From Tubulanus polymorphus (Eukaryota; Animalia; Nemertea): a DNA stretch of 64,000 nt. Below are positions 1 through 64,000 of the stretch, in pieces; the first letter of the stretch is position 1, and every line of letters begins with the position of its first letter. The DNA lies in contig NC_134030.1 of the NCBI RefSeq assembly GCF_964204645.1, forward strand, positions 3,948,778 through 4,012,777, in the 5' to 3' direction. Under the pieces are notes generated by a model. That model was not told the DNA's origin. It worked only from the letters and a program-made list of their open reading frames with translations, and ran no database searches. The translations under genes and the position numbers were made by a program.

Positions 1-225
1 TACAACAGCGTTAGAGGGTGGCAACCATCTCTTGTAACCAGCGACATGACAAATATGGTTGTTTCCGAACGTTCAACTGGCCCTTCGTTCATTCTTCCAC
101 CACATCACCTTCCGTTACCTATCAATGAATATCGCCTGCTGCATTATTTTATAGGTTACTTTTTACAGATATGAAAATTATGCGTAATATTCGTGATCCT
201 TAATGTTTTGTTTTTTTCATTCCAG

Positions 226-974
226 ATTTGGATGTTTTAACAGCAATACAGAAAAACAAGTCTGAAGCAGCCCGCGAAGCTCGTAACATCTTTGGAGCTT
301 TCGTTAACAGGTGCGTTGACTCCCTTCGCGAGCCTGAGGAGCAAGCTCCTCCATTAGTTATTGTGCCACCTTTTGAGCTTGCTCTTCCGCAGGAGGCGGA
401 CCCTGCTCCTGTACATCTGGAGCAGGAGGACGCCCCTGCCGTGGGGACCCCGACAGAGGCCCCACCGCTTCAGACGCCCGCACTGCGTCGGTCGCCCCGT
501 AGAAATAAAAATCCAGATATCAATTATGCAATAGGTTCGGGGCGTCCCAAAACAAAAAAGGGCAAACGTGCGGCTCGTCCTCCTCCACCGAGACAACCAA
601 ATTTTGAGGAGGAGAGCAGTGATGAGGAGGAATTCGCCACTCCTGGAGCGACATCACCACCAGGGCCCGCAACACCACCACCACCACCACCATCAACTGG
701 ACCAGCATCAACGATACCACGAATTAGACGAAACAAAAGAAGAATAGAAGAAGAAAATGAAAATAATGAAACACCTAATATTACACCCGCCCAGGCGTCA
801 ACATCGGGCGCTCCAGTGGGGGCGCCACCCTCCCCCGCTGTTGAGCTTATCGCGCGCGGCCCTGGTTGGTCTAAAAACATTGATTACCACGATCCCATCA
901 AAATGCTCCGCGATGTTGAAGGGGCCTTTAAAGGAAAATTTCAAATGGTTAAACGTCGGCGAACATCAAAGTAA
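226..974 (+). CDS. Terminal coding exon of the unit gene (Pro-rich, basic, putative nuclear protein); upstream exons lie outside the window
   Basis: GC-rich open frame preceded by a pyrimidine tract and acceptor ttttcattccag|at (AG at 224-225); no ATG of its own downstream of the acceptor near the start; near-identical copies at 33349 and 61163. Confidence 0.8.
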
Positions 975-1408
975 ATCAGCCCCTTCACTCGCCATCACCC
1001 GGGCAACAACATCAGCCCACGCACGTCTGCAGATCGGCACTTCTTGAAACTCAGTTTTCCCTTCCTCCTTCGTCGATCTGCAGGTCACGCAGTGTTAAAT
1101 ATCTGTCAACACTCCTTGAACCAGTGGGCGTGCAGTCCTTCCTTACTTTTATTTTGAAAAATATAAAAACAAAAAACCAGACCTTTATTTAATCATTGTT
1201 TTTATGGAGTTTTTACGGTTTCTCCAAAAAAATTTAAAATGACACAAATATAAAAAAATTCATTAACATTTCATCAATTTATTTATTTTTTGGATTAAAA
1301 GAAATTTTTTTCCATCATCTCCCATTCTCATTCATATACATTTTAAATCATTTATTCATTTGTTTTTTGACTGTACGTCCCACTGTGTTCCATACCATTT
1401 TTGCAAAA

Positions 1409-1840
1409 CCTTATTCATTAAGGTCCATTTTGCTTCTCACGATGCTGAAGCATTTACCATTTTTGCATTTCCTCTTGCAACACCTTATTAACTATGGTTC
1501 ATTTTGCTTCTCACAATGCTGAAGCATTTACCATCCTCGCATTACCTCTTACCATGTCTTATTAACGAAGGTTCATTTTGCTTCTCACGATGCTGAAGCA
1601 TTTACCATCCTCGCGTTACCTCTTACAACACCTTATTAACTAAGGTTCATTGTGCTCCTCATGATGCTGAAGCATTTACCATCCTTGCATTACCTCTTAC
1701 AACACCTTATTAACTAAGGTTCATTTTGCTTCTCATGATGCTGAAGCATTTACCATCCTTGCATTACCTCTTACAACACCTTATTAACTAAGGTTCATTG
1801 TGCTTCTCATGATGCTGAAGCATTTACCATTTTTGCATGG
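1409..1840. repeat. 74-bp tandem repeat, about 6 copies (about 5 in units 2 and 3: 34538-34890, 62349-62700)
   Basis: Monomer ttattaactaaggttcattttgcttctcatgatgctgaagcatttaccatccttgcattacctcttacaacacc; period measured 1633 to 1707. Confidence 0.95.
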
Positions 1841-3626
1841 TCTTTCTTATGAGTCATCTATTCTAACGCTATGGTCGGCCATGTAAAATCTCTTTCGGGA
1901 TATGCAGGGAATCAATTCCTATAATAACTCCTATGGAGTTTGAAAAAGGTGGATTTTTCAAATCAAAAGGAACAGCATTCACATGTGATTCCTTATTGAA
2001 CTAGGAACGTGGAGAAGGAATAGCTATGTTTCACACACATAATGCGTTTCCTTATGAAGCTGAAAATAACGTGGAGAAGGAACAGCTATGTTTCACATAA
2101 TGCGATTCCTTAGGAAACTACATTGAAACAGATTGTTCAATGTTCCATGTTGCCCCCTCCCCCAAATACTATGACGTTTATACGTCAAGTGTAAAACCAT
2201 TATATCGTTATAAACATACTTGTTTTTCTAATTACAGAATTAAAGATTAATTTAATATGACATGAAAACTTGAATGATTGAAATGTTAATATCTAATGCT
2301 CAACAACGGAGGAAAATCCTTCACATGTGAGCGGAAGGATCGAAAATGTTTACTCAGGAAGGAAAAGGAATATATATTTATATACGTGAGATTGCTTGGA
2401 TTAAAAATTGCACAAGAAAGGAAACCACAGCAAAGACTACGGTAATCAATTTCATCACATTTCTAAGGTGCGAAAGTTCACTGGATCAGTGATCAATCCA
2501 TGAATTTACGAGTTCTTAATTGAACATGCAAAAATCTGCAAAAATGCAATGATAAAGAATCTTGGATAAAAAAAGAATAAAATAAAGACCTTGGATTAGA
2601 GAATTATACGTAATCACTACAGTGATCAGGTTTTATTGATAGATATTGATCTCTACTTATCCTAAGGATCACCAGGATGAAGATTTTAAGACTCTTGTTA
2701 GATAATCTGCATCTCTTGTTGAAATCAATAAGGCATATGAGAGAGGAGGTCTGAGATATGAGAGAGGAGGTTCAGGGATATGAGAGTTAATGGAGATATG
2801 ATAGAGGAGTTTATGGAGATATGAATGATAGAGGATTTTATGGAGATATGATAGAGGAGTTTATAGAGATATGATAGAGGAGATGGTCTAAAAGGAAAAT
2901 TGTTAAGTCCATAACAATCGAGCAACTCAGTAATAGACGCCACTCTGATATAAGTAACTCCTGGTCCTCGATTGGGGTCTAGATTGCAGGAATTGCATTT
3001 AGCAATTTAAATATGGTTGATAGAGCGTGGAATTGTTTCCGTGTAGTCATGCAATGCACAAAACACACATCAGATTAAGGCTGTTGAGAGGGAATTATCA
3101 ATAGATGAAGTTGGTTTCAAGAGGTTGATCATTCATATGGCAGTTAATCAGATCAGGTTCTCAGGTGCTTCCTTGGTCCCCAAAAACTGCATAAGTTGTA
3201 TCAAAGTATGTGATATAACCTACTAATTGATTGCGTAAAAAGAGGCTACTTGTAGTTTCTCAGCCACTTTGCAATTATTGTTGTAAAGAGGTCACAAAAT
3301 CAGACCAGCACCACCAATAGATTTCTATTGAATAGTTAGTGTTGTAATTTTTGTGGTTCCAGTTTTTTTTTCACTTTCCGAGATAGAACAAAATTCCTAG
3401 ATTTTGGGTCCTTCAGTGCTGAAATTCTATTTTATCACAAATTTTAAGTTTCCTAATCTTAACTTTGCAAAAATTTGAACAAAAATTTTTAAAAAAATTC
3501 TTAAAAAATGAGAAATTAAAAAAAGTATAGGCCCTAATAGACATATTTTATGATAACTTTCTTAATTAAGGAGTCATCAAACGAGATAATATGAGGTATT
3601 TGAGATTGTCATGAGTTTGAACTTAC

Positions 3627-3851
3627 TTAATTCACAAAGCACGCCGAGGGAGGTGCGATCTAAGGTCAGGACCTTGGCGCGCACAGCCTCCATAAAGCTA
3701 CGAAAAAGATCTGCTTTATTAGTTGACATCGTTGACAGTTGGTATTTTCTTTCCGTTTTTTTTTTACTGCTGACTTTTGACTGCTGACTACTGACTGTTG
3801 ACTGATGACTCTGACTGCTGACTGCTGACTGCTGCTGACTGCTGACTGCTG
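3627..3851 (-). pseudogene. Inverted paralog of exon 2 of the unit gene (ATG at 3729; MSTNKADLFRSFMEAVRAKVLTLDRTSLGVLCEL); functional status unknown
   Basis: 18/34 aa identical to MSSKYDIFSGLLKVVRAEVLTLDPVSLGAFCDL; same phase-1 a|gtaagt donor; same ag|cagcag acceptor and CAG-rich 5'UTR; upstream intron similarity (aaccatgactcgaatccatagaaa at about 4452-4476 vs about 26262-26286). Confidence 0.8.
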
Positions 3852-4065
3852 CTGAAATGTAAAAAAGAAATTCTATGAAAATCAAGAATTAAATCGAAAA
3901 TGGTCAGTTTTAAGGAATACTCATCAAACTGAGTTTATATCCTAAACAATTGATACCCAGCAAAAAAAAATTTAAATAAAAATCATTTAATGAATGAACA
4001 TTAAAATTGTCGCTATTATTTAAACGTTATTCCAAGAAGCCACCGGAGTTAATCTCAATTTCAGT

Positions 4066-4420
4066 TGGCTACGAAATAGATCTGCTTTAGTTGACATCTT
4101 GATGTTCTTTAGTTGATATTTTCTCTATGTTTTCCTTCTGCTGACTGTTGACTGCTGACTGTTGACTGTTGACTCTGACTGATGACTGCTGACTGCTGAC
4201 TGCTGCTGAAATGTAAAAAAAGATATTCTATGAAAATCAAGAATTAAATCGAAAATGGTCAGTTTTAAGGAATACTCATCAAACTGAGTTTATATCCTAA
4301 ACAATTGATACCCAGCAAAAAAAAAATTGAAATAAAAATCATTTAATGAATGAACATTAAAATTGTCGCTATTATTTAAACATTATTCCAAGAAGCCACC
4401 GGAGTTAATCTCAATTTCAA
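4066..4420 (-). pseudogene. Second, truncated tandem copy of the inverted exon-2 paralog (MSTKADLFRS, then broken)
   Basis: About 355-bp duplication of 3710-4065; ATG at 4097; similarity to the coding part ends after about 10 codons. Confidence 0.75.
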
Positions 4421-7387
4421 AGCCAGTTGGCTGCGTTTCTCGAATGAATATTTTCTATGGATTCGAGTCATGGTTGAATCCTAATGATCACCGGGATAAA
4501 GATTCTGAGTTTAAGATTCTTGTTAGATTAATCTGCATCTCTTGTTGAAATCAATAAGGCATATGAGAGAGGAGGTCTGAGATATGAGAGAGGCAGTTGG
4601 GGAGGTATGAGAGTGGAGGTTCAGGAGAGTGGAGGTTCAGGAGAGAGGAGGTTCAGGGAATATGAGAGTTTATGGAGATATAATAGAGGAGTTTATGGAA
4701 GTATGATAGACGAATTTATGGAGATATGATAGGGGAGTTTATGGAGATATCATAGAGGAGTTTAAGGAGATATCATAGAGGAGATTGTCTAAAAGGAAAA
4801 TTGTTAAGTTCATAACAATCGAGCAACTCAGTAATAGACACCGCTCTGATAAAGTAACTTCTGGTCCTCAATTGCGGTCTGAATTGCAAGAATTGCGTTT
4901 AGCAATTTAAATATGGTTGATAGAGCGTGGAATTGTTTCCATGTAGGCGTGCAATGCACAAAACACACATCAGATTAAGGCTGTTGAGATGGAATTATCA
5001 GTAGATTTAAGTAATCGACGATGAATTTGGTTTCAAGAGGTTGATCATTCATATGGCAGTTAATCAGATCAGGTTCTCAGATGCTTCCTTGGTCCCCAAA
5101 AACTGCATAAGTTGTATCAAAGTATGTGATATAACCTACTAATTTATTACATGAAAAGAGGCTACTTGTAGTTTCTCAGCCACTTTGCAATTATTGTTGT
5201 AAAGAGGTCCCAAAATCCGACCAGCACCACCAATAGATTTCTACAGAACAGTTAGTGTTGTAATTTTTGTGGTTCCAGTTTTTTTTCACTGTCCGAGATA
5301 ATAAAAAATTCCTAAATTTTGAGTCCTTCAGTGCTGAAATTCCATTTTATCACAAATTTTAAGTTTCCTAATCTTAACTTTGCTAAAATTTGAACTTTTC
5401 CTATTCTATTTCTTGTCAAAGATTTCATTCCAGTTCTCAAAATGATTTGCAGTTTTTTAATGTCTGCGAAATATCGTCAGTTATTTTCCTGGATTCATAT
5501 TTATTATTGCCCAAAATCATATCTCATATGAATTATTATTACTATTATTGGATTTTTTTTTCGCTGATTGATTATAGATCTTTTGGGGTTTGGTTTCATA
5601 TTATGATTGATCAAGGTGATCCATCTAAAACTGTTTCATAAATTTTGAAATATTCATATATTCATATTTGAAAACAATTTCGTTGATACTTCTAAACTAG
5701 TAATTCTACAAAAATTCTAAAAACAATTTTACACGTATCTTACGACTATTCTAGAAATGATTTCAAATTATATCAATTTTAATGTAACTATTTTATCTGA
5801 ATTTTTAATCTATTAAAGTAACTATTTTATATCTGCATTTTAAAATACCTATGATATCTAAAAACTATTTTATCTGAATTTTAATCTATTAAGGTAACTA
5901 TTTAATATCTGAATTTTGAAATACTTTTGATATCGAAAAACTATTTTATCTGAATATTATACTATTTAATGTGTGTGTATTTTATCTCAAAGTATCTTTA
6001 AACTATTTTATTTGTATGTATATAAAAAAAATATCTCATTTGTATATATTTTAAAACTATTTAATTTGTACATATTTTGGAACACTTTTAGAACAATGTT
6101 TTATTTGTATTATAATACTAGCTAAAAGTTCAATTTGATGAAATATTTTATATATGACTATCACTGTGTATATTCGAACCTCAGTGATTTCATGAATGGA
6201 ATAACTGAAGGTCCAGGTTTTATCACTGAATACTCTTTGACACAATTACGTGGTCCACAACACAGATATAAATAGTGGTTATATAAAAGGCCCATGTTGT
6301 ATATAATGCACGCGTAAAGAGCTTTTACTCATAGTTGATATAGGCTCAGTAAACATGAAATGTGTTCAAGAACTTTTTCTCGTACTTTTCTTACCTTTTT
6401 TCTTGAGAATTTTTTTTTCAATTTTCTATTTTACAACGGAAGATCTACTCATTTTTCGTAGATGTTTCACTATCATGGAATGCGATAAATAATAAGAAAC
6501 AGTCCAAGTGTATTTTTGATAGGATATTTTCAGCTTCCCGACGTATGAAATTGACATAGGTTATTCAAGCCTAGGTTCAGAAAATCACTACTAGGTGGCA
6601 TGTCAGATTATTACCGTAGTTCAATTACATCAAATGAATATGATAACATAACCAATTGTAGTACGAACAGTAACAATAAACTTAATTTTCCTGCATAAGA
6701 TACAGAAAGTAGTAAAAGTCCAATACTATTTCTGAATTAGAATTTCCTCTAGCCTAAATGCTAGCGGTCATGTTATCATTTTTATCCAACGTCGTCACGG
6801 CTTTTTCAAAACTCGTCTTTGATCGTAATGATAATCTATAGTATTTTTGGAAATGATACAGATCAGCACAAATTTGATGTCATCAAAACAAAATATGTCG
6901 CTGAAAACATCATATGAAAAATACACTCCGATTGTTTTTTTTAATTTATTTCGTTCCATACAAAACCGTACTCAGCTCCACAGTTTGATTCGGATACAAG
7001 ACTTACAAGAATTTAGATACATAAAATTACATTACTGTTGAACTGGGTTTTGTTAAGTTGTGAGCATGACGTTTATAATTCACTAGTGTGTTTGTTTTAA
7101 GTTAGCCTTATCTTAAATTAGTTAGTTTTGGTTTAGTTATTTGTATCAATTTTTGCTGTTTGAATTTAATTCGTTCCAGTTGATTTAAGTCTAGTTTAGT
7201 TTAAGTTTTAGTTAGTTTAGGTCAAGTTGATTTACTAAATGCAGTTAACTTAAAACCTCTGATAAACTGAGGGTCAATTTATCTTATGATAAGTTACACT
7301 CAGGTACATTATAAATCAATAATCCGGTTTAAGATCTCATTATTTTATGCAGTTTAGAGATTTTCACTGAATAGAATAGTAACAATA

Positions 7388-8358
7388 GAACTGAGGGTTA
7401 ATTCATCATCGTTGAAATTACTCTCAAGATCATCATTAAAACAATGAATGAACTGAGGGTAAATTCATCATCGTTGAAATTACTCTCAGGATCATCATTA
7501 AAACAATGAATGAACTGAGGGTAAATTCATCATTGTTGAAATTACTCTCAGGATCATCATTAAAAAAATGAATGATCTGAGGGTAAATTCATCATTGTTG
7601 GAATTACTCTCAGGATCATCATTAAAACAATGAATGAACTGAGGGTAAATTCATCATTGTTGAAATTACTCTCAGGATCATCATTAAAACAATGAATGAA
7701 CTGAGGGTAAATTCATCATTGTTGAAATTACTCTCAGGATCATCATTAAAACAATGAATGAACTGAGGGTAAATTCATCATTGTTGAAATTACTCTCAGC
7801 ATCATCATTAAAACAATGAATGAACTGAGGGTAAATTCATCATTGTTGAAATTACTCTCAGGATCATCATAAAAACAATGAATGAACTGAGGGTAAATTT
7901 ATCATGGTTGAAATTACTCTCAGGATCATCATTAAAACAATGAATGAACTGAGGGTAAATTCATCATTGTTGAAATTACTCTCAGGATCATCATAAAAAC
8001 AATGAATGAACTGAGGGTAAATTTATCATGGTTGAAATTACTCTCAGGATCATCATTAAAACAATGAATGAACTGAGGGTAAATTTATCATGGTTGAAAT
8101 TACTCTTGGGATCATCATTAAAACAATGAATGAACTGAGGGTAAATTTATCATGGTTGAAATTACTCTCAGGATCATCATTAAAAAATGAATGAACTGAG
8201 GGTAAATTTATCATGGTTGAAATTACTCTCAGGATCATCATTAAAACAATGAATGAACTAAGGGTAAATTTATCATGGTTGAAATTACTCTCAGGATCAT
8301 CATTAAAACAATGAATGAACTGAGGGTAAATTCATCATTGTTGAAATTGCTCTCAGTT
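7388..8358. repeat. 62-bp hairpin-forming tandem repeat, 16 copies (11 copies at 38537-39197)
   Basis: Monomer gaactgagggtaaattcatcattgttgaaattactctcaggatcatcattaaaacaatgaat; internal dyad ctgagggtaa/ttactctcag. Confidence 0.97.
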
Positions 8359-8883
8359 CATTGAAAATATTTTAGCATTAACACCAGTTTTAATTACCCC
8401 TCCCCCTGTTTTCTTGTTAATTGATAGTTACATCACAAGTTATAGAATAGATGATTGGGTTTTTTTGGGACCTAAGTGTGTTCACTTTTTATCTGTAATT
8501 TGTCTGTTTTGGAAGCGCTTCAATGGATTGTCTTGAGATTTTGGTTTATGCACATATCTACCCTAGACACGCATCTGCAGCCCAAAACTGACAGAGAATC
8601 AAGATAGCTGACTGGTAGCCATCATGGAAATAGAATTATATACAATGTTTTCATCAGTTTTGGTACCTACGCATTTTACTGCAATCAATTGCAAATTTCT
8701 AGCATTGTTTTTTGTTGTGTTTACCAAGGGCATTGAATATTGAAATTGTCAGATTCTCAAGCATTGCACAGAGTGGGCATGGTGTCCCTGCACCCTTTGT
8801 TTTTTTATTTTCTCACCGCTTTCAAGGTTCTCGTACACATTTCATGCAGCTTTTTCATTCAATATCGATGTCATCCTCACTTG

Positions 8884-9210
8884 CCAGGTTTTAATTGTCA
8901 TCTGCCGAAGCCCATGCCAACACGATCCTTGGCCGCAAACTCTTCATTGGTCTCTTACATTGCTCAAGATTTCCTGGTTAGACAGGTTACCACTGAGCGG
9001 CCACCAGTCTATGTATTAAGTAAATCGGATGCGTTGTTTTTCGCCGGCAGTCTTGCAGCCGGCATCTGATTGACTGGATATAAAGACTGGTGGCCGCTTA
9101 GCAGCAACCTGTCGACCCGAGAGATCTTGGACAACATAATGGACCAATGAAGGGTTTGCGTGCAGGGTTTGTGTTAGCGTGAGTGCCGGTGGGCGGCAAT
9201 AAAACCCTGG
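8884..9210. repeat. Long imperfect inverted repeat (arms 8884-9032 and 9062-9210, 29-nt loop); candidate hairpin RNA
   Basis: Manual alignment of the left arm with the reverse complement of the right arm: 149 nt, no gaps, about 40 differences. Confidence 0.92.
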
Positions 9211-10369
9211 TGATTGAGGATGTATCGATGTACATATCAACGCATGAATAGCCAAACATTATAGGCGGCATTATTATTGGGAGGTTCACCTGGCCTAATA
9301 TACTGCGCGGTAAAAAAAACACTCTTTCTGTGGTTGTGTAGTACCAGTAATTGATGATCATCGAGTGAGTGATTGGCCTGGCCCAGTTATTCCAATTGGA
9401 AATCACTTTGGTTTTGATTATGATTGGTATAAAATATTTCATCAAATCGATTGACACATTTTATCCGTACTAACACTACTTGTACATATTGTAAAGTTGT
9501 AAATAGCTTTTTATTTATATTTCTTTTATTTTATTATTTTATATTCTTTTATTTTATATTATATTTCTTTTTAGATTTTTAATTGATTTCGATTTTCTAA
9601 TTGTAAATATTTTTTAGATATCCTTTTAACTTTGGATTTTTAATGATTATTTAAACTTTTTAAAAGTAATTTTAAAACTTTTTAATTTTCTTATCATCAT
9701 AATGTCTATACATCGAATAGGACTATTTTAGTGAAAATTTTGATATAGATTTAATTGATGATTAATATTTTTAATTTTATTGAATAATTTTAGTATTCAA
9801 AACAACAGAATGAATGCATTCCATCTTAGTTTGATACTGATATTTCTTTTCACTGGTTTTTCATTGACTCATGTCGAATCTATTGTTTTAGCCACATTTG
9901 TACCTATAAGTTTGGATTAGCCCTGCCTCCTTGACATTGCTGATGATTGATTTCAGATTTTCAGCGTCTGATTACATTTGGTATTAATTCAATGCTACAT
10001 TCTGTTTTGTTGGTTTTATTTCATATGAACATTTTTAAAGATGACCTTTGTCGAATACTTAGTAGTGCAGAGGTTAAAACAATTATAGAATTTTATAGAA
10101 TTGTCTAAAATACTGTACCTAGTAACATATGAGTAGTGTTGCTAGTGTACCTCTATTTACAAGTTGTCCGTGGTACGATGTAAAACTGCCTCTTTTAAAC
10201 AATACGTTTTAGCAATACATTTTATAAGTGATTTTTATCTGTTTGTCCTGTGGTATGACGTTAAACTGCCTCTTTTTAACAGTTTTTATCATTTTTTATC
10301 GTTTTTACCCATATGTTTTATTGTTTTTACCCATATGTTTTATCATTTTTATCACCCCTTCTTTTTCTA

Positions 10370-10636
10370 CCTGTCTCTATTCTATCCCTTTCTGTCTCTA
10401 TTCTATCCCTCTCTGCCTCTATCCTTTCCCTCTCTGTCTCTATCCTTTCCCTCTCTCTATCCTTTCCCTCTTCTATCTAACCCACTAACTCTCTCTTCTT
10501 CTCTCTCTAACCCACTAACTCTCTCCTCTCCTTTCTTCCTCTCACCACTCTCCTTCCTACTCCCTCCTCTCTCTCTTCTCTCTCCCTCCTCACTCTCCTT
10601 TATCTCTCTTTCTTTTCTCTCTCCCTCTCTCTCTCT
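10370..10636. repeat. CT-rich polypyrimidine low-complexity tract (also about 41210-41475)
   Basis: ctctctctatcctttccctct-type degenerate repeats; the ORFs called here are low-complexity artefacts. Confidence 0.9.
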
Positions 10637-10900
10637 TGTAAATATTGTAAATTTGTAAATAGTAGTATTTATTTCTCTTTTTGTATCTTTCTTGTAAATA
10701 TTGTAAATTTGTAAATAGTGGTTTTTATTTCTCCTTTTTTAACTTTCTTGTAAATATTGTACATTTGTAAATAGTAGTTTTTATTTCTCTCTCTCTCTTT
10801 TTTTAACTTTCTTGTAAATGTTGTAAATTTGTAAATATTAGTTTTTATTTCTTTTTTTTAACTTTCTTGTAAATTTGTAAATAGTAGTTTTTATTTCTAT
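10637..10900 (+). repeat. ~55-bp minisatellite rich in TGTAAATA
   Basis: cttgtaaatattgtaaatttgtaaatagtagtttttatttct repeated about 5 times. Confidence 0.85.
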
Positions 10901-11370
10901 TTCTTTTCTAAACTGTCTCTTTTAAACAATACGTTTTATCAATAGATTTTATCAGCGATTTTTATCTGTTTTGTCCTGTGGTATGACGTTAAACTGCCTC
11001 TTTTAAACATACGTTTTATCAATACATTTTATCAGTAATTTGTAAATACATTCGTAGCATTGATACCATTGCAATACATTAGTCCCTCCTCCTTTTGATT
11101 AAGTACACCCAATCATTTACTAACAAGTGATGGTTAAATACACTTGCAAACTAGCAGATCAGAGATCTCAGGACGCAACATCACTTCAATCCTTATTTCT
11201 TGACATATACCTGGTAATATAAAATGCTCTTTTTACCTTGTGACAAAATGTCTTCGATATAAGAAGCTACTATTTGCTTAACTAGAATCTTCTTTCAAAT
11301 ATTATAATATCACTGGTTTGCAATATACTTAACCCTCATTGGTCGCAGCTATTACAATCATCTCAACAAC

Positions 11371-16940: not shown

Positions 16941-16959
16941 ATTTTAAATTTGAATTCTA

Positions 16960-52000: not shown

Positions 52001-54721
52001 TGACAGCGTTCTCATTTCAGCATAGTGATCCGTTTAAAACGTATAATATCGTTAGCTACTTCTACGATACATACACTAATTATATACTTAATGCTTTCGA
52101 TCATATTGAATTCCATCTGTCAAGACGAACAACGAAACAATTAAAACAGCTCTCATATTGTTGAGGCGTTAGAAAAATAAAGAACCGAACGATATTTTGT
52201 GATGATCTGGTTTTCAGAAATCAAGAGAAGATATTTCGCAATTAACACAGTTTTCTAAAAACAGATATCATCCCTATAAACTACAAGTTTATTAGCGATG
52301 AGATTTCATATCAAAATCTGCAATAAAAAATCCAGGCCAAATATATATACCCGATACGGGTGGATAAGAGTAGATACATTTCCCATGATATTGTACTTGG
52401 TGGGAAATGTAGGCTACGTCGAGAGCGTGTCCATTTTATAGGAACGGTCGTATCTGAATCTGTCCATATGTGGTATTATAGCGAACATGACTGATTGCTG
52501 CTGAATTAAACTTTCGGGTTTAAATGTGACACTGGCCTATAAAACTCGCCCTGAATTATAGTAAATGAAATCCGTCTGTCAGAGACACATGTAATCATCA
52601 ACCCGAGTACAACATTGTCTCTATTTGAATTGTATTTCCCGCAGAAATCAATTCCTAGATCCGATTATCAGATTGTTAATGAGCTATGAATATTATATTG
52701 GAAGGGTTGCGTTGCCATTTCACTCGCGTTTATAGTGTTATATCATCGTATGTCGGGATTGATTTCCGAACTGGGTTTGATGCGGCCTTCTTGTAAAGCA
52801 CCTCTCACACGGTCCATAAATTGGGTGGAGGGAAGAAAATCACATTTTAAGTACATCCACATTTTATTTCAACGTCAAATTCCATGGGTTACATATCATT
52901 CAATTAAAGAAACAACGCATAAATGATATAGACGACAGACTTGGCTCGTATTGTAACTTCATTGTTTCTTTTTGAATTCTATGATCAATCCCGATTGATA
53001 GGTTACCTCGAAAATCAGGTTTTTTACATTGAGTTCGGAGATGTTTAAGCATTCTCCGATAGCAGATGAGAACTCCATCGACTGTTCTAGATTACTCGCG
53101 TGCCACAGTATGAAAGTCGAACTACCGAGTTAGTTCACAAATTCACTTCTTGATTTGCATAGGGGCACCACCCGACAATAGATAAAGACTACTCGCAGGA
53201 ATCACAGAGGCCTGACACAAAAGGTATACTCGAGTGGGGGCCACCACTGGGTTTACTCACTCACAATACGGGGCTGTTGTTTTTTGTCCCTTCAAAGTAG
53301 AAATTATACCCTCCGAAACTTTATCATCTGGAGGGTTCTTAAACATTTCTGTCGGACCAAAATTCGTGTTTCAACATGGGTCAGTTCACACCATCTATTT
53401 TCCTAAATTTTAGAGATCAACTAAATCATTTCACATAACAATAAATATCATGAATTAGGCCTACCCCTCATTACAATCTGAAATATAAAAAAAGAAACAC
53501 TCGAGGCGAGCTATCTAGTCCCGTTAAGAAAAAAAATTGCCAGCCAAATGTATGGTTTATTCTAGCGGGATTCGAAACTGCGACCTCCAGCAATAAGCAG
53601 GGGAAGCTAACAAGGCAAGCGTGCTAACCACTGGGCCATAGATCTCAGGTAATCTGTCCGGATTGTAAGTTTGCCTGCTATGTGATTTTGTATGTCTCTG
53701 CTTAAAATCGACAATTTTCAAAGTAAATCGTAGACAGTTTTTAAACGGATGAGTTAACCGGGCTAAACTTAAGACACACCACGATGAGCATTAATTGAAT
53801 TTGCGTGGTTTCGAACCAAATGAAATTTTTATGTGGTATTGATGAGGTTCGAATCCCATCAGGAAAGGATTTTCTTGACGTGGCGGGAATATTAGTACTT
53901 TTCATTGGTCAGGATCAGTGACGTCACACTGTCAGTATAAATACTCAGGTCAGCTGATCCCTCCTTCCAGTTCGGCCATTATTCAGGTAAGCAAACGTCG
54001 TCCATTTTAATTATTTCTTTCGATCAAATCTATTTATCAATCTTACTTGTAAATTTTATACATAGACCTTAGGTTTCGCATACGGTTTTGTTTAAGACAA
54101 TTTCAAAAGTTCCGAAAGTTCGGATTATATCATATACGTGTTTAATTATGACATTTCCATTGTGATGTTCTTTTTGCTCAAAATTGTCCAAATCGTATTT
54201 TTAATATTTAGAAGTAAATTACAACATTTGACTTTCATTTTCGTTCTCGTAAAAATGAAGACGTTATTGTGATTTTATTGAGGAATTTTATTTAATTTAT
54301 TTATGAAATTTTCGGAAGCAGTTATTCTGCTGTTCAAATCTACGCGCTAATGCGGCTAGTTGACATGCCTAGGTGTAATACACAGACCGCTCAGTCTATT
54401 CAACCATGACTCGAATCCATAGAAACCTTTTATTCGAAGCGTCGTTCAACTTAATTCTGGTGGCTTCTATATTTAATATTTAGAAAATAATGATGCCCAA
54501 TAATTTAATGTTATTATTATCTAATGCAAACTCGAGTTAGCTATTTCTTAGAATCAATAATTTTCGATTTTCTTGATTTTTATAACATTATTGTTTTTAC
54601 ATTGCAGCAGCAGCAGCAGTGACAGCAGCAGTACAAGACAAACATTGATACCAGCAAATTTATTACAACTTCAACTTAAACTTTAAACGAATTCAACTTC
54701 TACTTCAGCAGTAACACGACC

Positions 54722-54821
54722 ATGTCTTCAAAATATGACATTTTTTCCGGATTGTTAAAGGTAGTGCGCGCCGAGGTCCTGACACTCGACCCTGTATCCC
54801 TCGGCGCGTTTTGTGATTTGA
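54722..54821 (+). CDS. First coding exon of the unit gene, second copy
   Basis: Same coding sequence as 26584-26683; donor gtaagt at 54822. Confidence 0.75.
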
Positions 54822-55657
54822 GTAAGTACAAACTCTACTTCATCAAATTCTCGATTATTTTTAGTGACAAGCATCTAAAATTATTTGATTTCCAACATCT
54901 GAAATTGTTTGATCTCAAATTCACAATTATTTTATCTCAAATCTCCGCATTATTGGATACTAAATTTCAAATTGTCTCAATCTTCTATCATCAAATGTCA
55001 ATTTCTTTCAATCCACTTTTTAATTTCGGAAAACTCAATTTATGTCTCACACGGATTTCATTTCAATTTATTTTGAAAATATCATTTTATGTTTCTAGTC
55101 TTTTATTCTTTTTCAAATTACTCAATTCAATTTGCTAATAATTCTAATGGTGAATAATTGAATAATTTTAATTGAATTGAATTGAATAGTGAGTAGAGGT
55201 TCTGGTGGATGAGAATGAACTTGAGGAAGTAACTTCATTTCCTGGTTTTCAAATATCGTCGAAATTGTGAAATATTCATCATGTTTTTCATATGCAATGC
55301 TGTATCCAGTCAATAGAGATAAGTTACAACATAAACAGTTTAAACTGGCTAGGCCTCCAGACCAATGCACTTCATGGAAAATCCTGATTTATATGTTTAA
55401 TAAATCAAGTAACTGGACTGCGCGGTTCAGTCCATTTTAGTCAGTAAGTAAGCAGACTGCAGTTTAGTCCATATTTTAATCAGTAACTGGACTGCGGTGT
55501 AGTCAATATTTTAGTCAATAACGGGACTGCGCTGTAGTCCATCGTTTAGTCAATAACTGGACTGCGGTTTTGTCGATGGTTTAGTCAATAACTGGACTGC
55601 AGTTTAGACTGCTGTTCAGGAACCGGACAGCTGTTTAGTCCGTATCCAGATACCCGT

Positions 55658-58419
55658 CACATTATGGGACCAACTTTTTAGATACCGCTAAAATGTAGCA
55701 CTAGTATTTACGGTACTTTCGTTTTTCTCTGCGACTCCAGGATCCAACAACATGTGATTTTCTTTTTATTAATCATTGATCAAACGTCAGGATATTCAGG
55801 ATAACTTTTTTAATTAATTGGTTAAACTTCGTTTTTTCGTATCTCTAGGTAGTTGCTCGCGACAGTTTGAGATCCCGAGATTGTGGCGGGAAGGAGGTAT
55901 ATCTCAAGACTGCTATCATGAGCTTATCTGCGAACTAGTCTCAAGCCGCACCCACTCAATGTTTATTCTAGATCTAAACTAGGATATGATGTTTGATACG
56001 AATGTCTTTCACTAGCTCGGTTCATAGTCCGAATCTTCATCGTCTATTTGTTGGCGAATCCTAAATATTGCGGCCTTGAGGTAAATAGAGTTTAAACACG
56101 ATTTATTTCTAACGGATTCATTATTACGGTCAATGGTTGCCGCCTCGTTCTGAGTCATTTTAGTTGTGACCTTCCGCAGGACGTGGTTCTTACTTTAACT
56201 GAGCAGATCATCCCGTCTGTGCCTACATTTGTTGCCATAATAACGCCCAGCTGCCATAGAATTCTTCAATGGTGTATCTGTGAGTTTTTACAAACGCCCA
56301 AGATTCCTTGTTTCCTTGTGGACTGCGAGTGACATTAACTACCAGCAGCCATGACACGTATTCATCAATGAATCGTCTGCAACATCACTGGTTCAGTTTC
56401 AATCATCCTCACGTGCCGTTCGTTTCGTGAAGTTTTGGATCGACTATTTTGTCATTTTCGTTGTTCTTGTACGGAAGTAGATTGATTTGTGTCCTCAACA
56501 GTTGCAGACTGAAGTACTCAGTAATTTCTTGCACAAGTTGAAGTTTTCTGCATCGATCATGCAGCAGATGTCCGTTGGCAGGTGTCTGTTGGTAGGTGTC
56601 CATATGCAGATGTTTTTTTTTTGCAGTTTCAGCGTGAAATCATTAGCCATCTCTTCATTTACTTATAGGAGGTTTACATGTTTGTTATCAGTCAGCATCC
56701 CACATTATTAACATCTCGGACCAGTTATCCACTCCCAATCGATGAATTTCACCAACAGCACCCCCTAGAAAGAATTTATGCAATATTTTCAGCTGTTTCG
56801 AGGTAATTCCAATCAGAAACATTTGTTAACGTTTTTATCTTTTCCACTCTATTGTGTACGAATCATTTCAATCTTTGTCGACCAAATCCAACATTCATGT
56901 TTGAGTACATAGATCCATATGTGTCGGTTATTAGCTCGCTATATTCTACTCATTAACATTGCTTGTTATTCTTTCCTCACCTTAAAATTTTCGTTTAATT
57001 TTTCGAATCTGCAGTTTTACATCCAGGGTAATATACATGAAGCGGCCGATTACAACTTCAGGACATGCGTCAGTGAAGATTACAATTTCGGCTTCTTGTT
57101 ATGGGTCGACAACAAATCGTCTATCCAGTGTTTTCAGTAAGAAATTAACAAGCCAGGTCCCTTTGAAAAACAGGAGGGTCACATCGTATGTGACAGTCCC
57201 TGAAAAAACAGTGGGGTCCTTAAAAAATGACAGACGCGTCTGAGACCCGGGACCTGGCTCTTATTGAAAACACTGCTATCATCCATCGCTTTTTCGTTAC
57301 TAAGTTCGAAGGAATTTCTGATCTTTGTCCATTGGCCCGTTTTTACTCTTCGTCCCTTTCAATGTTCACTGTCCATTGCTTAATCATAAGGGCTTTCATG
57401 GTGCAACGATCCTACTAAGTCCCAAAGGATCAAATATCGATGACCATTTTGACAGAACGTTTCCTTTCGTTTCGACGTATCTTTTTTACATGTATGAATC
57501 ATGATATTACTTTCCATTTCTTTTTGATTGGTTCAGCATCCTGTTGATCGATAAATCAAGTAGCACTGTTCTTGCGGTGGACCGGTGGTCAACAATTTCT
57601 GTCGATTCTTTTTCATAATCCTTATCGCTTGCGGATTCTAGACTAAAGTTTCTTCAATTCTCTCGAATATCGTTAAAATTTTCTTGTATGTTTTTTAAAA
57701 TTCCTCCAGCAACGATTCGAGAACTGTAACTTGTTTTTCGTCGATATCTTCTCTGAGGAGTGCTCAATTTTTCTCAACATTTTTTCAGATGTTGATAATA
57801 AACATTGTTGTTGTTTCTTCAGTTCTGCCCGAATGGCTTCACCTTCAGAGGGCTCACCCATCCATGAAAATAATACTAAAAAATACTACTGTTGGTTATG
57901 ACCAGGAATGAAGTTTTGCAGAGAGATGACGAAGTGACGATGTGCAATCCATTGATTCTTTACTAAACTGAATTGCTGCTTTATTTCTATATTAAAAACT
58001 ACAAAAGTATCAGCTTATCATCTCATGGACGGTGCGCGATCGGACGGTGTGAGCGGAAGTTGCGATTAGCACAGATGTTGCCGCGGGATCCGGATAAGTG
58101 CCAGTTACACGCTTATCTCTGTACTGAGGAGAATCATTCACAAAATCGCTACTTTTGGTTTACAGTTCCAACTTCTCTTTTTGTCAGAACGTCAAAATTC
58201 ACTTCTTTTTTTTTTAACTCTCTTTAGTATTCGTATGATTGTAATTAGGTCGCACCAACATTGTGTAGGAAACTCAACATGTAATATGCCATAAGTACTA
58301 TTTATACAGATCAATCTATCCAATATTCTGAATTATTCAGTAAAAATGAATATAGCGAAAATCTGACAAAAAAAATTGCTACTTTTCAGCTGCACCAAAG
58401 CATACGGTCCCATACAGTG
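55658..58419. mobile_element. CACTA/EnSpm-like element with BEL/Pao relic, unit 2 copy
   Basis: Same TIRs, GT duplication and insertion site as 27534-30304. Confidence 0.7.
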
Positions 58420-60376
58420 GTTTAGTCAGTATCCGGACCACAGTTTAGTCAGTATCCGGACCACAGTTTAGTCAGTAACGAAACTGTGTGATTCATTTCG
58501 TTCTGAGAACAGATTTTATCAAATTTCCTCTAGCTGTTCTTCAGATAGGCCTACCCTTTGACTAAATGTTTTATTTTCAGAATTCTTTTATAAAAAGTAT
58601 ATCCTCCACCGTTATCCAGGCCTGACATTTATCAAGGTCTATCCTGTTTTACACCTTACAAGTTCGACAGCGACATTTGATATTGTTTTTTCTGTAAATG
58701 GCTGCAGCTGTATTCATAGTGAATTATTCCACTGAATGATTCTATACTTGAATGGTAAGTAGTGACTTATTTGAAATACTTAATGAATTCATTTGAAAAA
58801 GGCCTAAATTCTAAATATCATTAATTGTTCGCGTTTTAACGATGTTTGATTTTTATAGATAAAAATCTTATTATAATTTGTAGTGAATGGATTTGATTGT
58901 ATGAAGGTACAGCAGTGGACAGTGTCATGTGAAATGGTTTTTACACCTTATGGTTGTTTCTGAAGGTACAGTAGCCGGCAGTGTCATGTGAAATGGTTTT
59001 TAACCCTGATGGTTGTTTCTGAGAATAACAGTTGAAGTTTTTCGTTTGATGATGAAAATACAGAAGAAATATGAATGAAATTTTTGGTGTCATTTTTCTG
59101 TTTGTCATGCAATGAAAATGAATTAGACTTACTTAGCAAAAACCATAGGGAAATGTACAGTACTCGAAGGAAATATCACAATTTTTGGAACTAAAATTCG
59201 GTGAAAATTCATTTTAGAAAAAAATATTTTCAAATGTATCGCATTTTATTGGATTTTTTGCCCTTAATGATACTGTAGACTTCGCTTAAACTGGTAGACG
59301 GTCTATATCTGGTATAATCTGTTCAATTCGATGAAATAAAGATGAAATGTTGTTCTAAATACATATGTTTTGCCTTTTATGGTATTGCTCTGTTCGATGA
59401 TGATAATAATAACAATATTATGCGTCTGATGTAGCCCTAAATCCAGCAGCAGCTCAGAGCGCTTTACATTTTACGGTTTTATTGCCCCAGCCATTTAATG
59501 GTCTGCTGGGGTGAAGTAACATCCGAGCAGCTGCTAGGCGCTCAGGGGTCATCTATCAGGCCAGGTACCCAATTACTCCTGGGTGCAAAGAGGCAATGAG
59601 GATAAGTGTCTTGCCGGGGACACAACGGTAATATACGGGGTTTGAATCCATGACGATCTGGTTTCCCAGAACGCTTTCCGTATCCCATAAATTCAATGCC
59701 CTTCATTGTTACTTAAAAGCAGGAAAATCAGTAGAAACTTTGGAGCTCAATAGAGTGAAAACTGTAAGAGATAAAGCTGGTAATTGAAAAGTTTGTAGGG
59801 TATGACCCTTGGATAATTTTGGTGATGATTATTCTTACTGAAAGTGAAGTCCTATGCAAATGAGCTAATTCGCATAAATCATAATCAGTGACCTATTTAT
59901 TTGAAAACCCCCTAAATTGCAGGTATCGAAATGAACAAATCGGGTATCTAGCCTCAGCTAACAGCTGACAATGGAATATTCTTTGTCTACGGTTAGAAAT
60001 ATATATTTTATGGGTAATTATAATTAGTAAATGAGCTAATAATTAAATCATGTGACCTCCGGATAAGTACCCGCTACTTTCAAATGCAAAAAAACTCAAA
60101 TATTTTCAATAGCAACACCATAAAAACGCAGCATAAAAACTTACTAATGGGTGCTGCCATTTAATCAAGCCATTTAGCGGCAGGTTTCTCCGCTGAATTC
60201 TATGCGACTAAACTGCTATAAGAAATGTCGACGAAAGTCGACAGGGCACTGAAAAAGTTATAGAAGGAATTTGGGTATTCACTACATGGTCAGATTGTAT
60301 AAAATACAAAGAAATTGATTATTTTGACCGCTATTAGGCTCAATAAAACTTTTGATCAAATTACCTAATGAGATGA

Positions 60377-60778
60377 AAAACGCCGAGATATCGCACGTGC
60401 CCCCTCATCCGAGAAACAACCGTTTGCCGCAGCCACAACAAAATGTACGCGATCCGCAGCACAATTAATTGCGCGACCCGTGAAATCATATACTGCATCG
60501 AATGCACCAAGTGCAACCTGCTGTACGTCGGCCTAACCGGAATGTCTTTACAAGAACGCGTCACACATCACGTCTCGCGCATCAGAACGTATAATTCGAC
60601 TCCAGTCACGGACCACTTCAACCAGGTCGACCACACCTACCAACACTTTCGGGTGTATGGTCTCCAACACCTACCAGGCTCGACGAGACCGATCCGCGAA
60701 GCAGCCAAACGAGACTGGATATTGGTCTTGATTCGTTTCAATATCAAATCGACACTAATTTTAGATACCAGTAACTAG
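60377..60778 (+). pseudogene. Penelope-like GIY-YIG fragment, unit 2 copy
   Basis: Same lesions as the unit 1 copy plus several amino-acid changes. Confidence 0.85.
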
Positions 60779-60933
60779 CGTAGTACCCGTCCACGGATGG
60801 ATTGTCATAAATGTATTGGATATAGTTATAAAATGTACGCTGAAAGATTCCATTATCTGCCTCATTTATGATCTACTATACCGTTGTCTAACAATACGGT
60901 TATTACAGATAATGAGAGTGATAAAATTGTATT

Positions 60934-63900
60934 TACAACAGCGTTAGAGGGTGGCAACCATCTCTTGCAACCAGCGACATGACAAATATGGTTGTTTCCG
61001 AACGTTCAACTGGCCCTTCGTTCGTTCTTCCATCACATCACTTTCCGTTACCTATCAATGAATATCGCCTGCTGCATTATTTTATAGGTTACTTTTTACA
61101 GATATGAAAATTGTATGCGTAATATTCGTGATCCTTAATGTTTTGTTTTTTTTTCATTCCAGATTTGGATGTTTTAACAGCAATACAGAAAAACAAGTCT
61201 GAAGCAGCCCGCGAAGCTCGTAACATCTTTGGAGCTTTCGTTAACAGGTGCGTTGACTCCCTTCGCGAGCCTGAGGAGCAAGCTCCTCCTTTAGTTATTG
61301 TGCCACCTTTTGAGCTTGCTCTTCCGCAGGAGGCGGACCCTGCTCCTGTACATCTGGAGCAGGAGGACGCCCCTGCCGTGGGGACCCCGACAGAGGCCCC
61401 ACCGCTTCAGACGCCCGCACTGCGTCGGTCGCCCCGTAGAAATATAAATCCAGATATCAATTATGCAATAGGTTCGGGGCGTCCCAAAACAAAAAAGGGC
61501 AAACGTGCGGCTCGTCCTCCTCCACCGAGACAACCAAATTTTGAGGAGGAGAGCAGTGATGAGGAGGAATTCGCCACTCCTGGAGCGACATCACCACCAG
61601 GGCCCGCAACACCACCACCACCACCACCATCAACTGGACCAGCATCAACGATACCACGAATAAGACGAAACAAAAGAAGAATAGAAGAAGAAAATGAAAA
61701 TAATGAAACACCTAATATTACGCCCGCCCAGGCGTCAACATCGGGCGCTCCAGTGGGGGCACCACCCTCCCCCGCTGTTGAGCTTATCGCGCGCGGCCCT
61801 GGTTGGTCTAAAAACATTGATTACCACGATCCCATCAAAATGCTCCGCGATGTTGAAGGGGCCTTTAAAGGAAAATTTCAAATGGTTAAACGTCGGCGAA
61901 CATCAAAGTAAATCAGCCCCTTCACTCGCCATCACCCGGGCAACAACATCAGCCCACGCACGTCTGCAGATCGGCACTTCTTGAAACTCAGTTTTCCCTT
62001 CCTCCTTCGTCGATCTGCAGGTCACGCAGTGTTAAATATCTGTCAACACTCCTTGAACCAGTGGGCGTGCAGTCCTTCCTTACTTTTATTTTGAAAAATA
62101 TAAAAATAAAAAACCAGACCTTTATTTAATCATTGTTTTTATGGAGTTTTTACGGTTTCTCCAAAAAAATTTAAAATGATACAAATATAAAAAAATTCAT
62201 GATCATTTCATAAATTTATTTATTTTTTGGATTAAAAGAAATTTTTTTCCATCATCTCCCATTCTCATTCATATACATTTTAAATCATTTATTTATTTAT
62301 TTTTTTGACTGTACGTCCCACTGTGTTCCATACCATTTTTGCAACACCTTATTCATTAAGGTCCATTTTGCTTCTCACGATACTGAAGCATTTACCATTT
62401 TTGCATTTCCTCTTGCAAAACCTTATTAACTATGGTTCATTTTGCTTCTCACGATGCTGAAGCATTTACCATCCTCGCATTACCTCTTACAACACCTTAT
62501 TAACTAAGGTTCATTGTGCTTCTCATGATGCTGAAGCATTTACCATCCTTGCATTACCTCTTACAACACCTTATTAACTAAGGTTCATTTTGCTTCTCAT
62601 GATGCTGAAGCATTTACCATCCTTGCATTACCTCTTACAACACCTTATTAACTAAGGTTCATTGTGCTTCTCATGATGCTGAAGCATTTACCATTTTTGC
62701 ATGGTCTTTCTTATGAGTCATCTATTCTAACGCTATGGTCGGCCGTTGCAAAATCTCTTTCGGGATAAGCAGGGAATCAATTCCTATAATAACTCCTATG
62801 GAGTTTGAAAAAGGTGGATTTTTCAAATCAAAAGGAACAGCATTCACATGTGATTCCTTATCGAACTACGAAGGTGGAGAAGGAATAGCTATGTTTCACA
62901 CATAATGCGTTTCCTTATGAAGCTGAAAATAACGTGGAGAAGGAACAGCTATGTTTCACATAATGCGATTCCTTAGGAAACTACATTGAAACAGATTGTT
63001 CAATGTTCCATGTTGCCCCTCCCCACAAATACTATGACGTTTATACGTCAATTGTAAAACCATTATATCGTTATTAACATACTTGTTTTTCTAATTACAG
63101 AATTAAAGATTAATTTAATATGACATGAAAACTTGAATGATTGAAATGTTAATATCTAATGCTCAACAACGCATGAAAATCCTTCACATGTGAGCGGAAG
63201 GATTGAAAATGTTTACTCAGGAAGGAAAAGGAATATATATTTATATACGTGAGATTGCCTGGATTAAAAATTGCACAAGAAAGGAAACCACAGCAAAGAC
63301 TACGGTAATCAATTTCATCACATTTCTAAGGTGCGAAAGTTCACTGGATCAGTGATCAATCCATGAATTTATGAGTTCTTAATTGAACATGGAAAATCTG
63401 CAAAAATGCAATGATAAAGAATCTTGGATAAAAAAAGAATAAAATAAAGATCTTGGATTAGAGATTTAGTCATAATCACTTCAGTGATCAGGTTTTATTG
63501 ATTGATATTGATCTCTACTTATTCTAACGATCACCAGGATGATGATTTGAGTTTAAGATTCTTGTTAGATTAATCTGCATCTCTTGTTGAAATCAATAAG
63601 GCATATGAGAGAGGAGGTCTGAGATATGAGAGAGGCAGTTGGGGAGGTATGAGAGTGGAGGTTCAGGAGAGTGGAGGTTCAGGAGAGAGGAGGTTCAGGG
63701 AATATGAAAGTTTATGGAGATATAGTAGAGAGTGTATGGAAGTATGATAGAGGAGTTTAAGGAGATATCATAGAGGAGATTGTCTTAAAGGAAAATTGTT
63801 AAGTTCATAACAATCGAGCAACTCGGTAATAGACTCCGCTCTGATAAAGTAACGTCTTCTGGTCCTCGATTGCGGTCTGAATTGCAAGAATTGTGTTAAG

Positions 63901-64000
63901 CAATTTAAATATGGTTGATAGAGCGTGGAATTGTTTCCATGTAGGCATGCAATGCACAAAACACACATCAGATTAAGGCTGTTGAGAGGGAATTATCAAT
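60934..64000. repeat. Giant tandem unit, copy 3 (partial)
   Basis: Colinear with 33129-36190, including the same junction that lacks the 1.8 kb segment. Confidence 0.96.
61163..61911 (+). CDS. Terminal coding exon, third copy; spliced to 54722-54821 it gives 282 aa
   Basis: Same acceptor and open frame. Confidence 0.8.

Follow-up and report, generated by a model that had tools for sequence, protein, structure and literature searches.

A tandem array of seven gene-bearing units in the ribbon worm Tubulanus polymorphus, probably a recent amplification within a large duplicon family

How does a block of about 30 kb that carries a complete gene, many satellites, and a long inverted repeat come to stand head to tail in an animal genome, and is the gene that it carries a working one? 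The question is raised by a stretch of 64,000 nucleotides from the ribbon worm Tubulanus polymorphus (contig NC_134030.1, here C6, of the 267.8-Mb assembly GCF_964204645.1), C6:3948778-4012777, which we call the window and which, at 36% G+C, is AT-rich animal DNA. It very probably lies inside a young tandem amplification of seven copies and 217.8 kb, whose source was a single member of a duplicon family that is large and restricted to the lineage. The gene in each copy is most likely a functional protein-coding gene transcribed by RNA polymerase II, to which the sequence assigns no role.

Self-BLAST of the window and a histogram of k-mer offsets gave long colinear matches with 92-98.6% identity at offsets of about 33.1, 27.8-28.2, and 60.9 kb. 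In the phase of the self-BLAST, the window is made up of unit 1 (1-33128), unit 2 (33129-60933), and part of a unit 3 (60934-64000). The head-to-tail units of 33.1 and 27.8 kb proposed in the initial annotation were thus recovered in this self-comparison with the same sizes and offsets, and the series extends further. For the limits of the array, the window was taken together with 100 kb on each side (264-kb region) and unit 2 was compared with the whole region. The array covers C6:3874689-4092518 and consists of exactly seven units, U1 to U7, with lengths of 31729, 34111, 33135, 28138, 29226, 32395, and 29095 bp. According to junction probes and direct reading of the sequence, the internal junctions are identical in six of six cases, with ...caggttttt joined directly to TACATTGAG... 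The outer edges of the array share the phase of the units, the left edge beginning with TACATTGAG and the right edge finishing with caggttttt. At most a few bases of microhomology (TACA) are present at the join of the units, and no repeat common to both ends of the array join was seen. Because the six junctions are the same and both edges are in phase, exactly seven units would have descended from one founding head-to-tail join. In the phase of the junctions, the window starts with the 3' part of U3 (1..24886, plus strand), which begins 8.2 kb before the window and is flanked by junctions at positions 91752 and 124887 of the 264-kb region, the latter corresponding to window position 24887. It continues with the complete U4 (24887..53024, plus strand, 28,138 bp), bounded by two of the identical junctions, and with the 5' part of U5 (53025..64000, plus strand).

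Large near-identical repeats are error-prone to assemble, and the haplotypes or reads of one locus might have been mis-joined head to tail. This is barely credible for the present array. Seven units were found and not two, their six junctions are identical, the edges pass cleanly into unique gene-bearing flanks, and the 264-kb region contains no Ns. Moreover, each unit has its own satellite copy numbers, private insertions measure 0.86-2.9 kb, and since every unit carries between 78 and 234 private substitutions in addition to its own indels, the units are seven distinct copies. They are nevertheless 98-99% alike, with an inter-unit nucleotide diversity (pi) of 0.005-0.02 in unique sequence. 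The groups of units that share variants shift along the unit, from {3,6} at 34.9-38.9 kb to {2,6,7} at 38.9-40.9 kb and {4,6} at 48.9-50.9 kb, and because these groupings form a mosaic, sequence has probably been exchanged between units. In U2, 114 of the 234 private substitutions fall into a single 2-kb patch (aligned window 40887-42887, about C6:3926-3929 kb), which adjoins an inverted piece of 160 bp (C6:3926830-3926992, minus strand, 99%). The patch could be due to gene conversion from a diverged paralogue or to a rearrangement at this place.

In each of the seven units the gene copy is intact: it starts with an ATG, its frame is open, and the GTAAGT and CCAG splice sites are conserved. 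The one intact-looking gene per unit and the gene-bearing tandem array of large units, both read from the window at the outset, therefore hold for the complete array of seven units and six identical junctions. In the predicted gene, exon 1 supplies the ATG and 100 coding nt and ends at a phase-1 GTAAGT donor. The intron spans 6.3-9.8 kb, and the last exon (749-755 nt), preceded by TTTTCATTCCAG, continues the frame of exon 1 to a predicted product of 281-283 aa. The length changes among the seven gene copies are all in-frame and concern a poly-proline run of 7-9 and one glutamate. Upstream of the gene, the promoter region contains an ATTGG (CCAAT) box, a cAMP response element (CRE; TGACGTCA), and a TATA box (TATAAATA). 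A non-coding exon 0 of about 20 nt is predicted to end in a GTAAGC donor, and the corresponding acceptor is located 114 nt before the ATG. Together, these signals suggest that the gene copies are transcribed and spliced.

The copies in the window are all on the plus strand. Of gene copy 3 only exon 2 is included (226..974, coding including the stop; 100226-100974 of the 264-kb region), exon 1 being upstream of the window. In gene copy 5, the ATTGG box (53904-53908), the CRE TGACGTCA (53919-53926), and the TATAAATA box (53936-53943) were read directly from the sequence, the box and the putative exon 0 together occupying 53936..53986 with the donor GT at 53987; exon 1 is at 54608..54821 with the ATG at 54722, and exon 2 at 61163..61911. 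By the offset of 28,138 bp from copy 5, the TATAAATA box and the short non-coding exon 0 of gene copy 4 with its GTAAGC donor should be located at 25798..25848, and its CRE TGACGTCA and ATTGG box just upstream of 25798. Exon 1 of copy 4 (26470..26683) comprises the acceptor ...ttgcag, the 5' untranslated region (UTR), the ATG at 26584, 33 codons plus one base, and the GTAAGT donor. It is followed by an intron of 6,665 bp (26684..33348), which contains a 35-mer array and a Penelope-type relic, and by exon 2 (33349..34100) with its phase-1 acceptor TTTTCATTCCAG, 249 codons plus stop, and an AATAAA about 190 nt downstream.

Is the unit an invention of this locus? It had been treated as self-contained, a view that did not survive a six-frame protein search of the genome with exon 2, because the same gene, promoter, and hairpin are present at about 40 loci. 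The search returned 95 matches. In addition to the seven array copies, there are about 45 loci with stop-free frames of 255-324 aa and 55-73% identity on C1-C5 and C8-C11. Family blocks in which gene, promoter, flank, and hairpin are colinear were found in both orientations on C1, C2, C3, C4, C5, C6, C8, C9, C10, and C11. Common to the paralogue loci are a promoter region of 1.0-1.6 kb at 77-86% identity and a 3' flank of 5-8 kb at 78-86%. The satellite region has been kept in the same order at the two loci scored, both on C2, and a further segment 13-28 kb downstream is shared even in a more distant subfamily. Because promoter, 3' flank, satellite region, and far-downstream segment are shared across loci, gene and cassette appear to form an old duplicon of at least 24 kb at about 40 loci, and the C6 array would be a local burst of one of its members. 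The family blocks seem to be located mostly towards chromosome ends. The proximity to telomeres was examined on C1, whose members are located at 0.4-2.9 and 28.5-31.56 Mb with one further member at 7.5 Mb; a TTAGGG tract is present at 32.06 Mb, and the nearby copies are 0.5-1.5 Mb away from it.

Two further repeats touch on the family. At C8:15157718-15171328, six matches with a spacing of 2.69 kb cover only the C-terminal 53 aa (residues 195-247) at 62-63% identity and are part of open frames of 128-144 aa, which suggests a small tandem array of its own, formed by a shorter gene with the C-terminal module. On the minus strand of C6:2048060-2135487, a segment of the unit of about 2.7 kb (window 48285-51024) is found again three times, at distances of 37-46 kb and with 92-95% identity. 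This is probably another array of large units, which would contain this segment and lack the gene.

Some 40 copies with conserved architecture, distributed in both orientations over ten or more chromosomes, might also be expected if the block were a giant mobile element that spreads by self-copying, with the array as a by-product of its replication. It would also fit such an element that the left edge of the array unit precedes the onset of homology to the paralogue blocks by about 66 bp (many matches start from query position 6192, the junction being at 6126). However, the unit encodes no intact enzyme, the sole recognisable frame being a GIY-YIG relic of 133 aa, and apart from the internal hairpin no terminal inverted or direct repeats of at least 60 nt were found in it. 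Furthermore, the dispersed copies have diverged by 14-25%, and their bias towards chromosome ends fits ectopic recombination. We therefore rejected an autonomous or giant transposable element as candidate, for want of termini and an intact enzyme, and give the self-copying of the block only a very slim chance.

Whether the gene copies function can be judged from their variation. Among the seven copies, exon 2 has seven non-synonymous and seven synonymous variable codons. Across the whole unit, 1209 of 24990 ungapped columns are variable (density 0.048). Applied to exon 2, this density predicts 27 non-synonymous and 9 synonymous variable sites, so that amino-acid-changing sites are about four times rarer than expected (Poisson P = 5e-6). 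The ratio of the two classes, similar to the ratio of non-synonymous to synonymous substitution rates (dN/dS), is 0.34 in exon 2 among the array copies. In addition, variation within the unit is lowest in the kilobases that contain the promoter with exon 1 and in those that contain exon 2 (pi of 0.005-0.007 versus 0.01-0.05). Because amino-acid-changing sites are deficient, synonymous sites vary as expected, and the coding kilobases are least variable, this pattern of variation indicates that purifying selection has acted on the array copies, as genes that encode a protein, ever since they were amplified.

The same data bear on the view that the array is a neutral segmental duplication with the gene copies as passengers, which would be decaying or would never have been functional. 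In units this young (1-2% divergence), an intact frame is by itself weak evidence of function. Satellites and transposon relics abound in the region, and expression of the gene is deduced from sequence signals. Against these considerations stands the roughly fourfold deficit of non-synonymous variation relative to the unit average, with synonymous sites at that average, and the low variability of the promoter and both coding exons. Also, neutral decay would have closed the frames of the about 45 old paralogues, which are still open. Neutrality is accordingly quite improbable.

The protein itself gives few clues. It is proline-rich and basic, with runs resembling nuclear localisation signals (NLS; KTKKGKR, RRNKRR, KRRR). 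Neither exon 2 nor exon 1 contains a Pfam family. Exon 2 had no match in a word-indexed protein search, none at E <= 0.001 in a HMMER search against 1.84 billion (1.84e9) protein representatives, and nothing below E 0.1 among PDB sequences. The orphan status assumed for the gene from the beginning is in line with this lack of matches in Pfam, the PDB sequences, and the 1.84 billion representatives; the gene seems to have no detectable relatives outside the ribbon-worm genome, the coverage of ribbon worms in the searched libraries not being established. Modelled by AlphaFold from its single sequence, exon 2 is predicted to be largely disordered; the predicted local distance difference test score (pLDDT) is 56.7, which is too weak for a fold search, and helices are placed at residues 2-37, 171-179, 204-209, and 224-246. 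The predicted product would accordingly be helical in its N-terminal part and end in a helical basic C-terminal module, the long middle between them being disordered, basic, and rich in proline and containing the NLS-like runs. With low confidence, it might be a nuclear protein associated with chromatin or nucleic acids.

Several points weigh against a simple amplification of a conserved functional gene. When old paralogues are compared, nucleotide identity is 74-76% over the initial two-thirds of exon 2, 83-87% over its last third and the 3' UTR, and 81-86% in the flanks. By this comparison the disordered part of the protein changes faster than the nearby non-coding DNA, which is not explained by simple purifying selection. 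Diversifying selection could be the cause, or the segments of the block could have had different recombination histories. Concerning its location, the array is 3.9 Mb into a contig of 23.0 Mb and beside ordinary genes, and is hence not strictly subtelomeric. The right side of the array is adjoined at a distance of 10-16 kb by a pancreatic-type lipase exon (PF00151, E 1e-41; C6:4102411-4103653) and several thrombospondin type-1 repeats in a row (PF00090, E 1e-11; C6:4107144-4108581), and because of these neighbours the array must be considered embedded in gene-bearing DNA. Another open frame in the flank, tried as an ASC channel, was only marginally ASC-like according to Pfam and was rejected; a protein search with it gave no match and is uninformative as a control for coverage. 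Concerning the protein, exon 2 (249 aa) and exon 1 (33 aa) entered the searches separately and exon 2 alone was folded, and any function is a guess from the composition and a single-sequence model of low confidence. Finally, transcription, splicing, and the true copy number of the gene are all deduced from the assembled sequence.

In spite of these points we favour the amplification of one family member, for which the following order of events, reconstructed from the array, can be proposed. A block of about 26-28 kb, which comprised the promoter, the three-exon gene, and a 3' cassette with the satellites and the hairpin and also carried transposon relics of older date, would have been duplicated once by a non-homologous join that created the junction between caggttttt and TACATTGAG. 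Unequal crossing-over between the units could then have increased their number to seven. Gene conversion or further crossing-over would hold the units at their 98-99% similarity and distribute the shared variants as a mosaic. Meanwhile, replication slippage or unequal exchange would alter the internal satellites, and new transposons would land in single units. The amplification as a whole would raise the dose of the gene product.

The satellites are a conspicuous part of the unit. The initial annotation had counted six or more internal arrays per unit and supposed that they changed in copy number after the amplification, and both statements agree with the complete array. Tandem Repeats Finder detects a common set in every unit, with periods of 74, 62, 56, 97, 153, about 160, and 28 bp, plus 35, 62b, and 268. 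By seed counts in each of the seven units, the 74-mer (4-5 copies) and the 56-mer (5 copies) are near-constant. Copy-variable are the 62-mer (8-18), the 97-mer (8-16), the 153-mer (4-23), the 160-mer (9-13), and the 28-mer (12-18), the 153-mer being the main source of the difference between 33.1 and 27.8 kb in the window. In the order of U4, the same program places the 74-bp satellite at 34531..34891 (4.9 copies; also at 1404-1838 and 62342-62702) and the 62-bp satellite at 38536..39194 (10.6 copies; 15.6 copies at 7388-8356). The 56-bp satellite follows at 41472..41717 (4.3 copies, constant among units; also at 10634-10882), then the 97-bp satellite at 42171..43172 (10.3 copies; also at 11336-12240). 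The 153-bp satellite has about two copies in U4 (44528..44853) and extends over about 3.3 kb in U3 (13594-16942). Next to it is a satellite of 159-162 bp with a higher-order period of 320 bp (44869..46881, 12.6 copies; also at 16958-18650), and the last is a 28-bp minisatellite (49485..49815, 12.1 copies; 17.1 copies at 21212-21681). The repeat unit of the 62-bp satellite is partly palindromic (CTGAGGGTAAATT...AATTACTCTCAG) in both of its arrays (38536-39194 and 7388-8356), because of which these match their own reverse strand at 69-72%.

Concerning transposons, the units had been said to share the same dead insertions, older than the amplification. This is true for the sole shared relic that can be named, a 5'-truncated Penelope-type relic, which is found in the intron of all seven copies and must for this reason predate the amplification. 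In copy 4 it is located at 32572..32970 (plus strand) with an open frame of 133 aa, in copy 5 at 60377..60775 (plus strand). The frame contains a zinc-finger-like CxxC and a GIY-YIG motif (PF01541, E 1.6e-4), the score of 22.3 bits being just under the cutoff of 22.6. The statement does not extend to all insertions, since private ones that are younger than the amplification also exist. They measure 857 bp in U1 and 2934 bp in U2, and one of 1049 bp is common to U3 and U6. A 1318-bp element at C6:4038807-4040124 has terminal inverted repeats of 44 bp that are 91% complementary. Because it is present in U6 only and splits the GIY-YIG relic there, it can be classified by its structure as a non-autonomous DNA transposon, apparently active after the amplification. 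When 26 further open frames from the unit, the private insertions, and the array flanks were searched against Pfam, the GIY-YIG relic was the only credible match within the unit and the insertions; weak matches in satellite-derived frames were dismissed as chance. Upstream of the promoter and within a duplicated stretch of 76 bp there are also tRNA-like pieces (53540-53650 on the minus strand, 53800-53860, 22741-22888, and 50868-51015), which contain T-arm boxes of the GGTTCGAA type and a D-arm resembling GGCCCAGTGGTTAGCACGC. ARAGORN called no tRNA in them, and they are therefore probably relics of short interspersed nuclear elements (SINEs).

What remains is the inverted repeat, the candidate for the small-RNA or heterochromatin control that the initial annotation considered possible. 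The repeat itself is real. It is an imperfect inverted repeat of 410 nt at 39677..40086 (plus strand), 5.6 kb downstream of the gene and on the same strand, with the U3 copy at 8839-9245. RNA of the plus strand folds into one long imperfect hairpin with a minimum free energy of -215 kcal/mol (z = -14.8), compared with -177 kcal/mol (z = -12) for the minus strand, and the gene strand is thus better by about 39 kcal/mol. Over about 185 positions, the arms form 129 Watson-Crick and 20 G-U pairs, with 10 A-C and 23 other mismatches and 7 gaps. Elsewhere the genome contains about 38 further full-length copies that are 82-89% identical and almost unchanged in length, each a few kb (about 5-7 kb) downstream of a family gene and in the same orientation. 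Because only two partial copies were found elsewhere, the hairpin is not a dispersed family of miniature inverted-repeat transposable elements (MITEs).

These features might be explained in another way if the family were an ampliconic one engaged in conflict, with a protein that takes part in an arms race (in the germline, by meiotic drive, or similar) and a hairpin RNA that silences or marks the family. Such a family would account for the full-length hairpin in fixed orientation at about 38 loci, where it is 3-9 points better conserved than the surrounding flank of 2 kb. It would also account for the finding that the hairpin outlasts the protein at C8:16.63 Mb and C3:1.06 Mb (88% compared with 46-53% aa identity), for the better fold on the gene strand, for the divergence of exon 2 beyond its non-coding flanks, and for a gene that is orphan and multi-copy. 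However, in a blastn comparison of the hairpin with the whole unit at word size 7, only the hairpin itself, its own other arm, and chance 11-16-mers were found. The hairpin can therefore not target the gene by complementarity. The excess of G-U over A-C (20 versus 10) is not significant (p = 0.10), and of the few changes seen in the seven copies, one is a double compensatory change and six, all in U2, are G>A changes that break a pair. Rfam gave no match at gathering scores and only sub-threshold matches of the hairpin to generic microRNA hairpins. In addition, selection within the array is purifying, and the uneven divergence of exon 2 may simply reflect the recombination histories of block segments. 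Taken together, we consider a conflict family unlikely. Small-RNA control elements of the unit's own, in their self-targeting form, are not supported by the comparison of the arms with the gene or by the insignificant G-U asymmetry, and a suppressor of the Su(Ste)/Nmy type, a hairpin derived from the gene, was rejected on the same lack of homology although a stable hairpin is present. That the gene is dosage-sensitive or selfish is speculation, the only hints being the divergence of exon 2 above the flanks between old paralogues and the purifying selection within the array. The small-RNA and selfish-gene reading gains no support from the tests run here. A wider version is likewise unlikely, in which the gene for a fast-evolving orphan nuclear protein and a hairpin-RNA gene downstream on the same strand would be a conserved two-part module at the about 38 loci, small RNAs from the hairpin or a DNA cruciform would control chromatin or copy number of the family, and the C6 array would mark a recent burst of dosage, or an escape, in a conflict within the genome.

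The amplification of one duplicon, in contrast, has close counterparts in known systems. Human arrays with whole genes in units of 20-24 kb include TSPY (20.3 kb), CT45 (19.9 kb), and RBMY (23.6 kb), and arrays of ordinary transposon-laden units that were amplified by unequal crossing-over have been catalogued as well (Warburton et al. 2008, PMC2588610). With TSPY, CT45, and RBMY, the array has in common that units of tens of kb, each with a single complete and spliced gene, follow one another head to tail, that old interspersed repeats in them predate the amplification, that inter-unit identity is at least 95%, and that the expansion is ascribed to unequal crossing-over. It differs in that the ribbon-worm gene has no known relatives or domain, in the seven or more copy-variable internal satellite arrays of its units, and in the membership of the unit in a family of about 40 loci. 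The comparison with ampliconic gene arrays made in the initial annotation is thus apt, and the array is a gene-bearing macrosatellite of the TSPY/CT45 kind in every feature that could be tested.

Less can be gained from the second analogy made there, D4Z4/DUX4. The D4Z4 unit has 3.3 kb and contains DUX4, an intronless double-homeobox retrogene. An open reading frame in every unit and family copies on several chromosomes towards the ends are common to both, but the ribbon-worm units have 28-34 kb, and their gene is spliced over an intron of 6.3-9.8 kb and encodes neither a homeobox nor any Pfam domain, which makes D4Z4 a poor analogue. Subtelomeric duplicons such as the yeast Y' elements and the human subtelomeric blocks resemble the family in that gene-carrying blocks of many kb are found in both orientations on many chromosome ends, sometimes in short tandem runs and with exchange between copies. 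Unlike these, the C6 array is 3.9 Mb from the start of its contig and beside ordinary genes, and it contains no helicase or other known gene. In the Drosophila systems Stellate/Su(Ste) and Dox/Nmy/Tmy, the target gene is the source of the hairpin or antisense repeat. The ribbon-worm family is similar to them in its fast-evolving multi-copy gene associated with an inverted-repeat locus and different in that its hairpin shares no sequence with the gene.

As a structure, the array is well documented but not surprising in kind, a fairly ordinary recent gene amplification. Its value is that the birth of a gene-bearing macrosatellite outside the vertebrates and model organisms is cleanly resolved, from one founding non-homologous junction to an expansion to seven units, with exchange between the units, turnover of satellites, and fresh transposon hits all visible. 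The gene, for which no relatives are detectable, seems to be under selection, as amino-acid changes are about fourfold under-represented and the frames of about 45 paralogues are open, and the blocks of its family have retained kilobases of non-coding architecture including the 410-nt hairpin. If expression in the germline or small RNAs from the hairpin proved true, the family would be a tractable model for the evolution of new genes, and possibly for genomic conflict, in a little-studied phylum.

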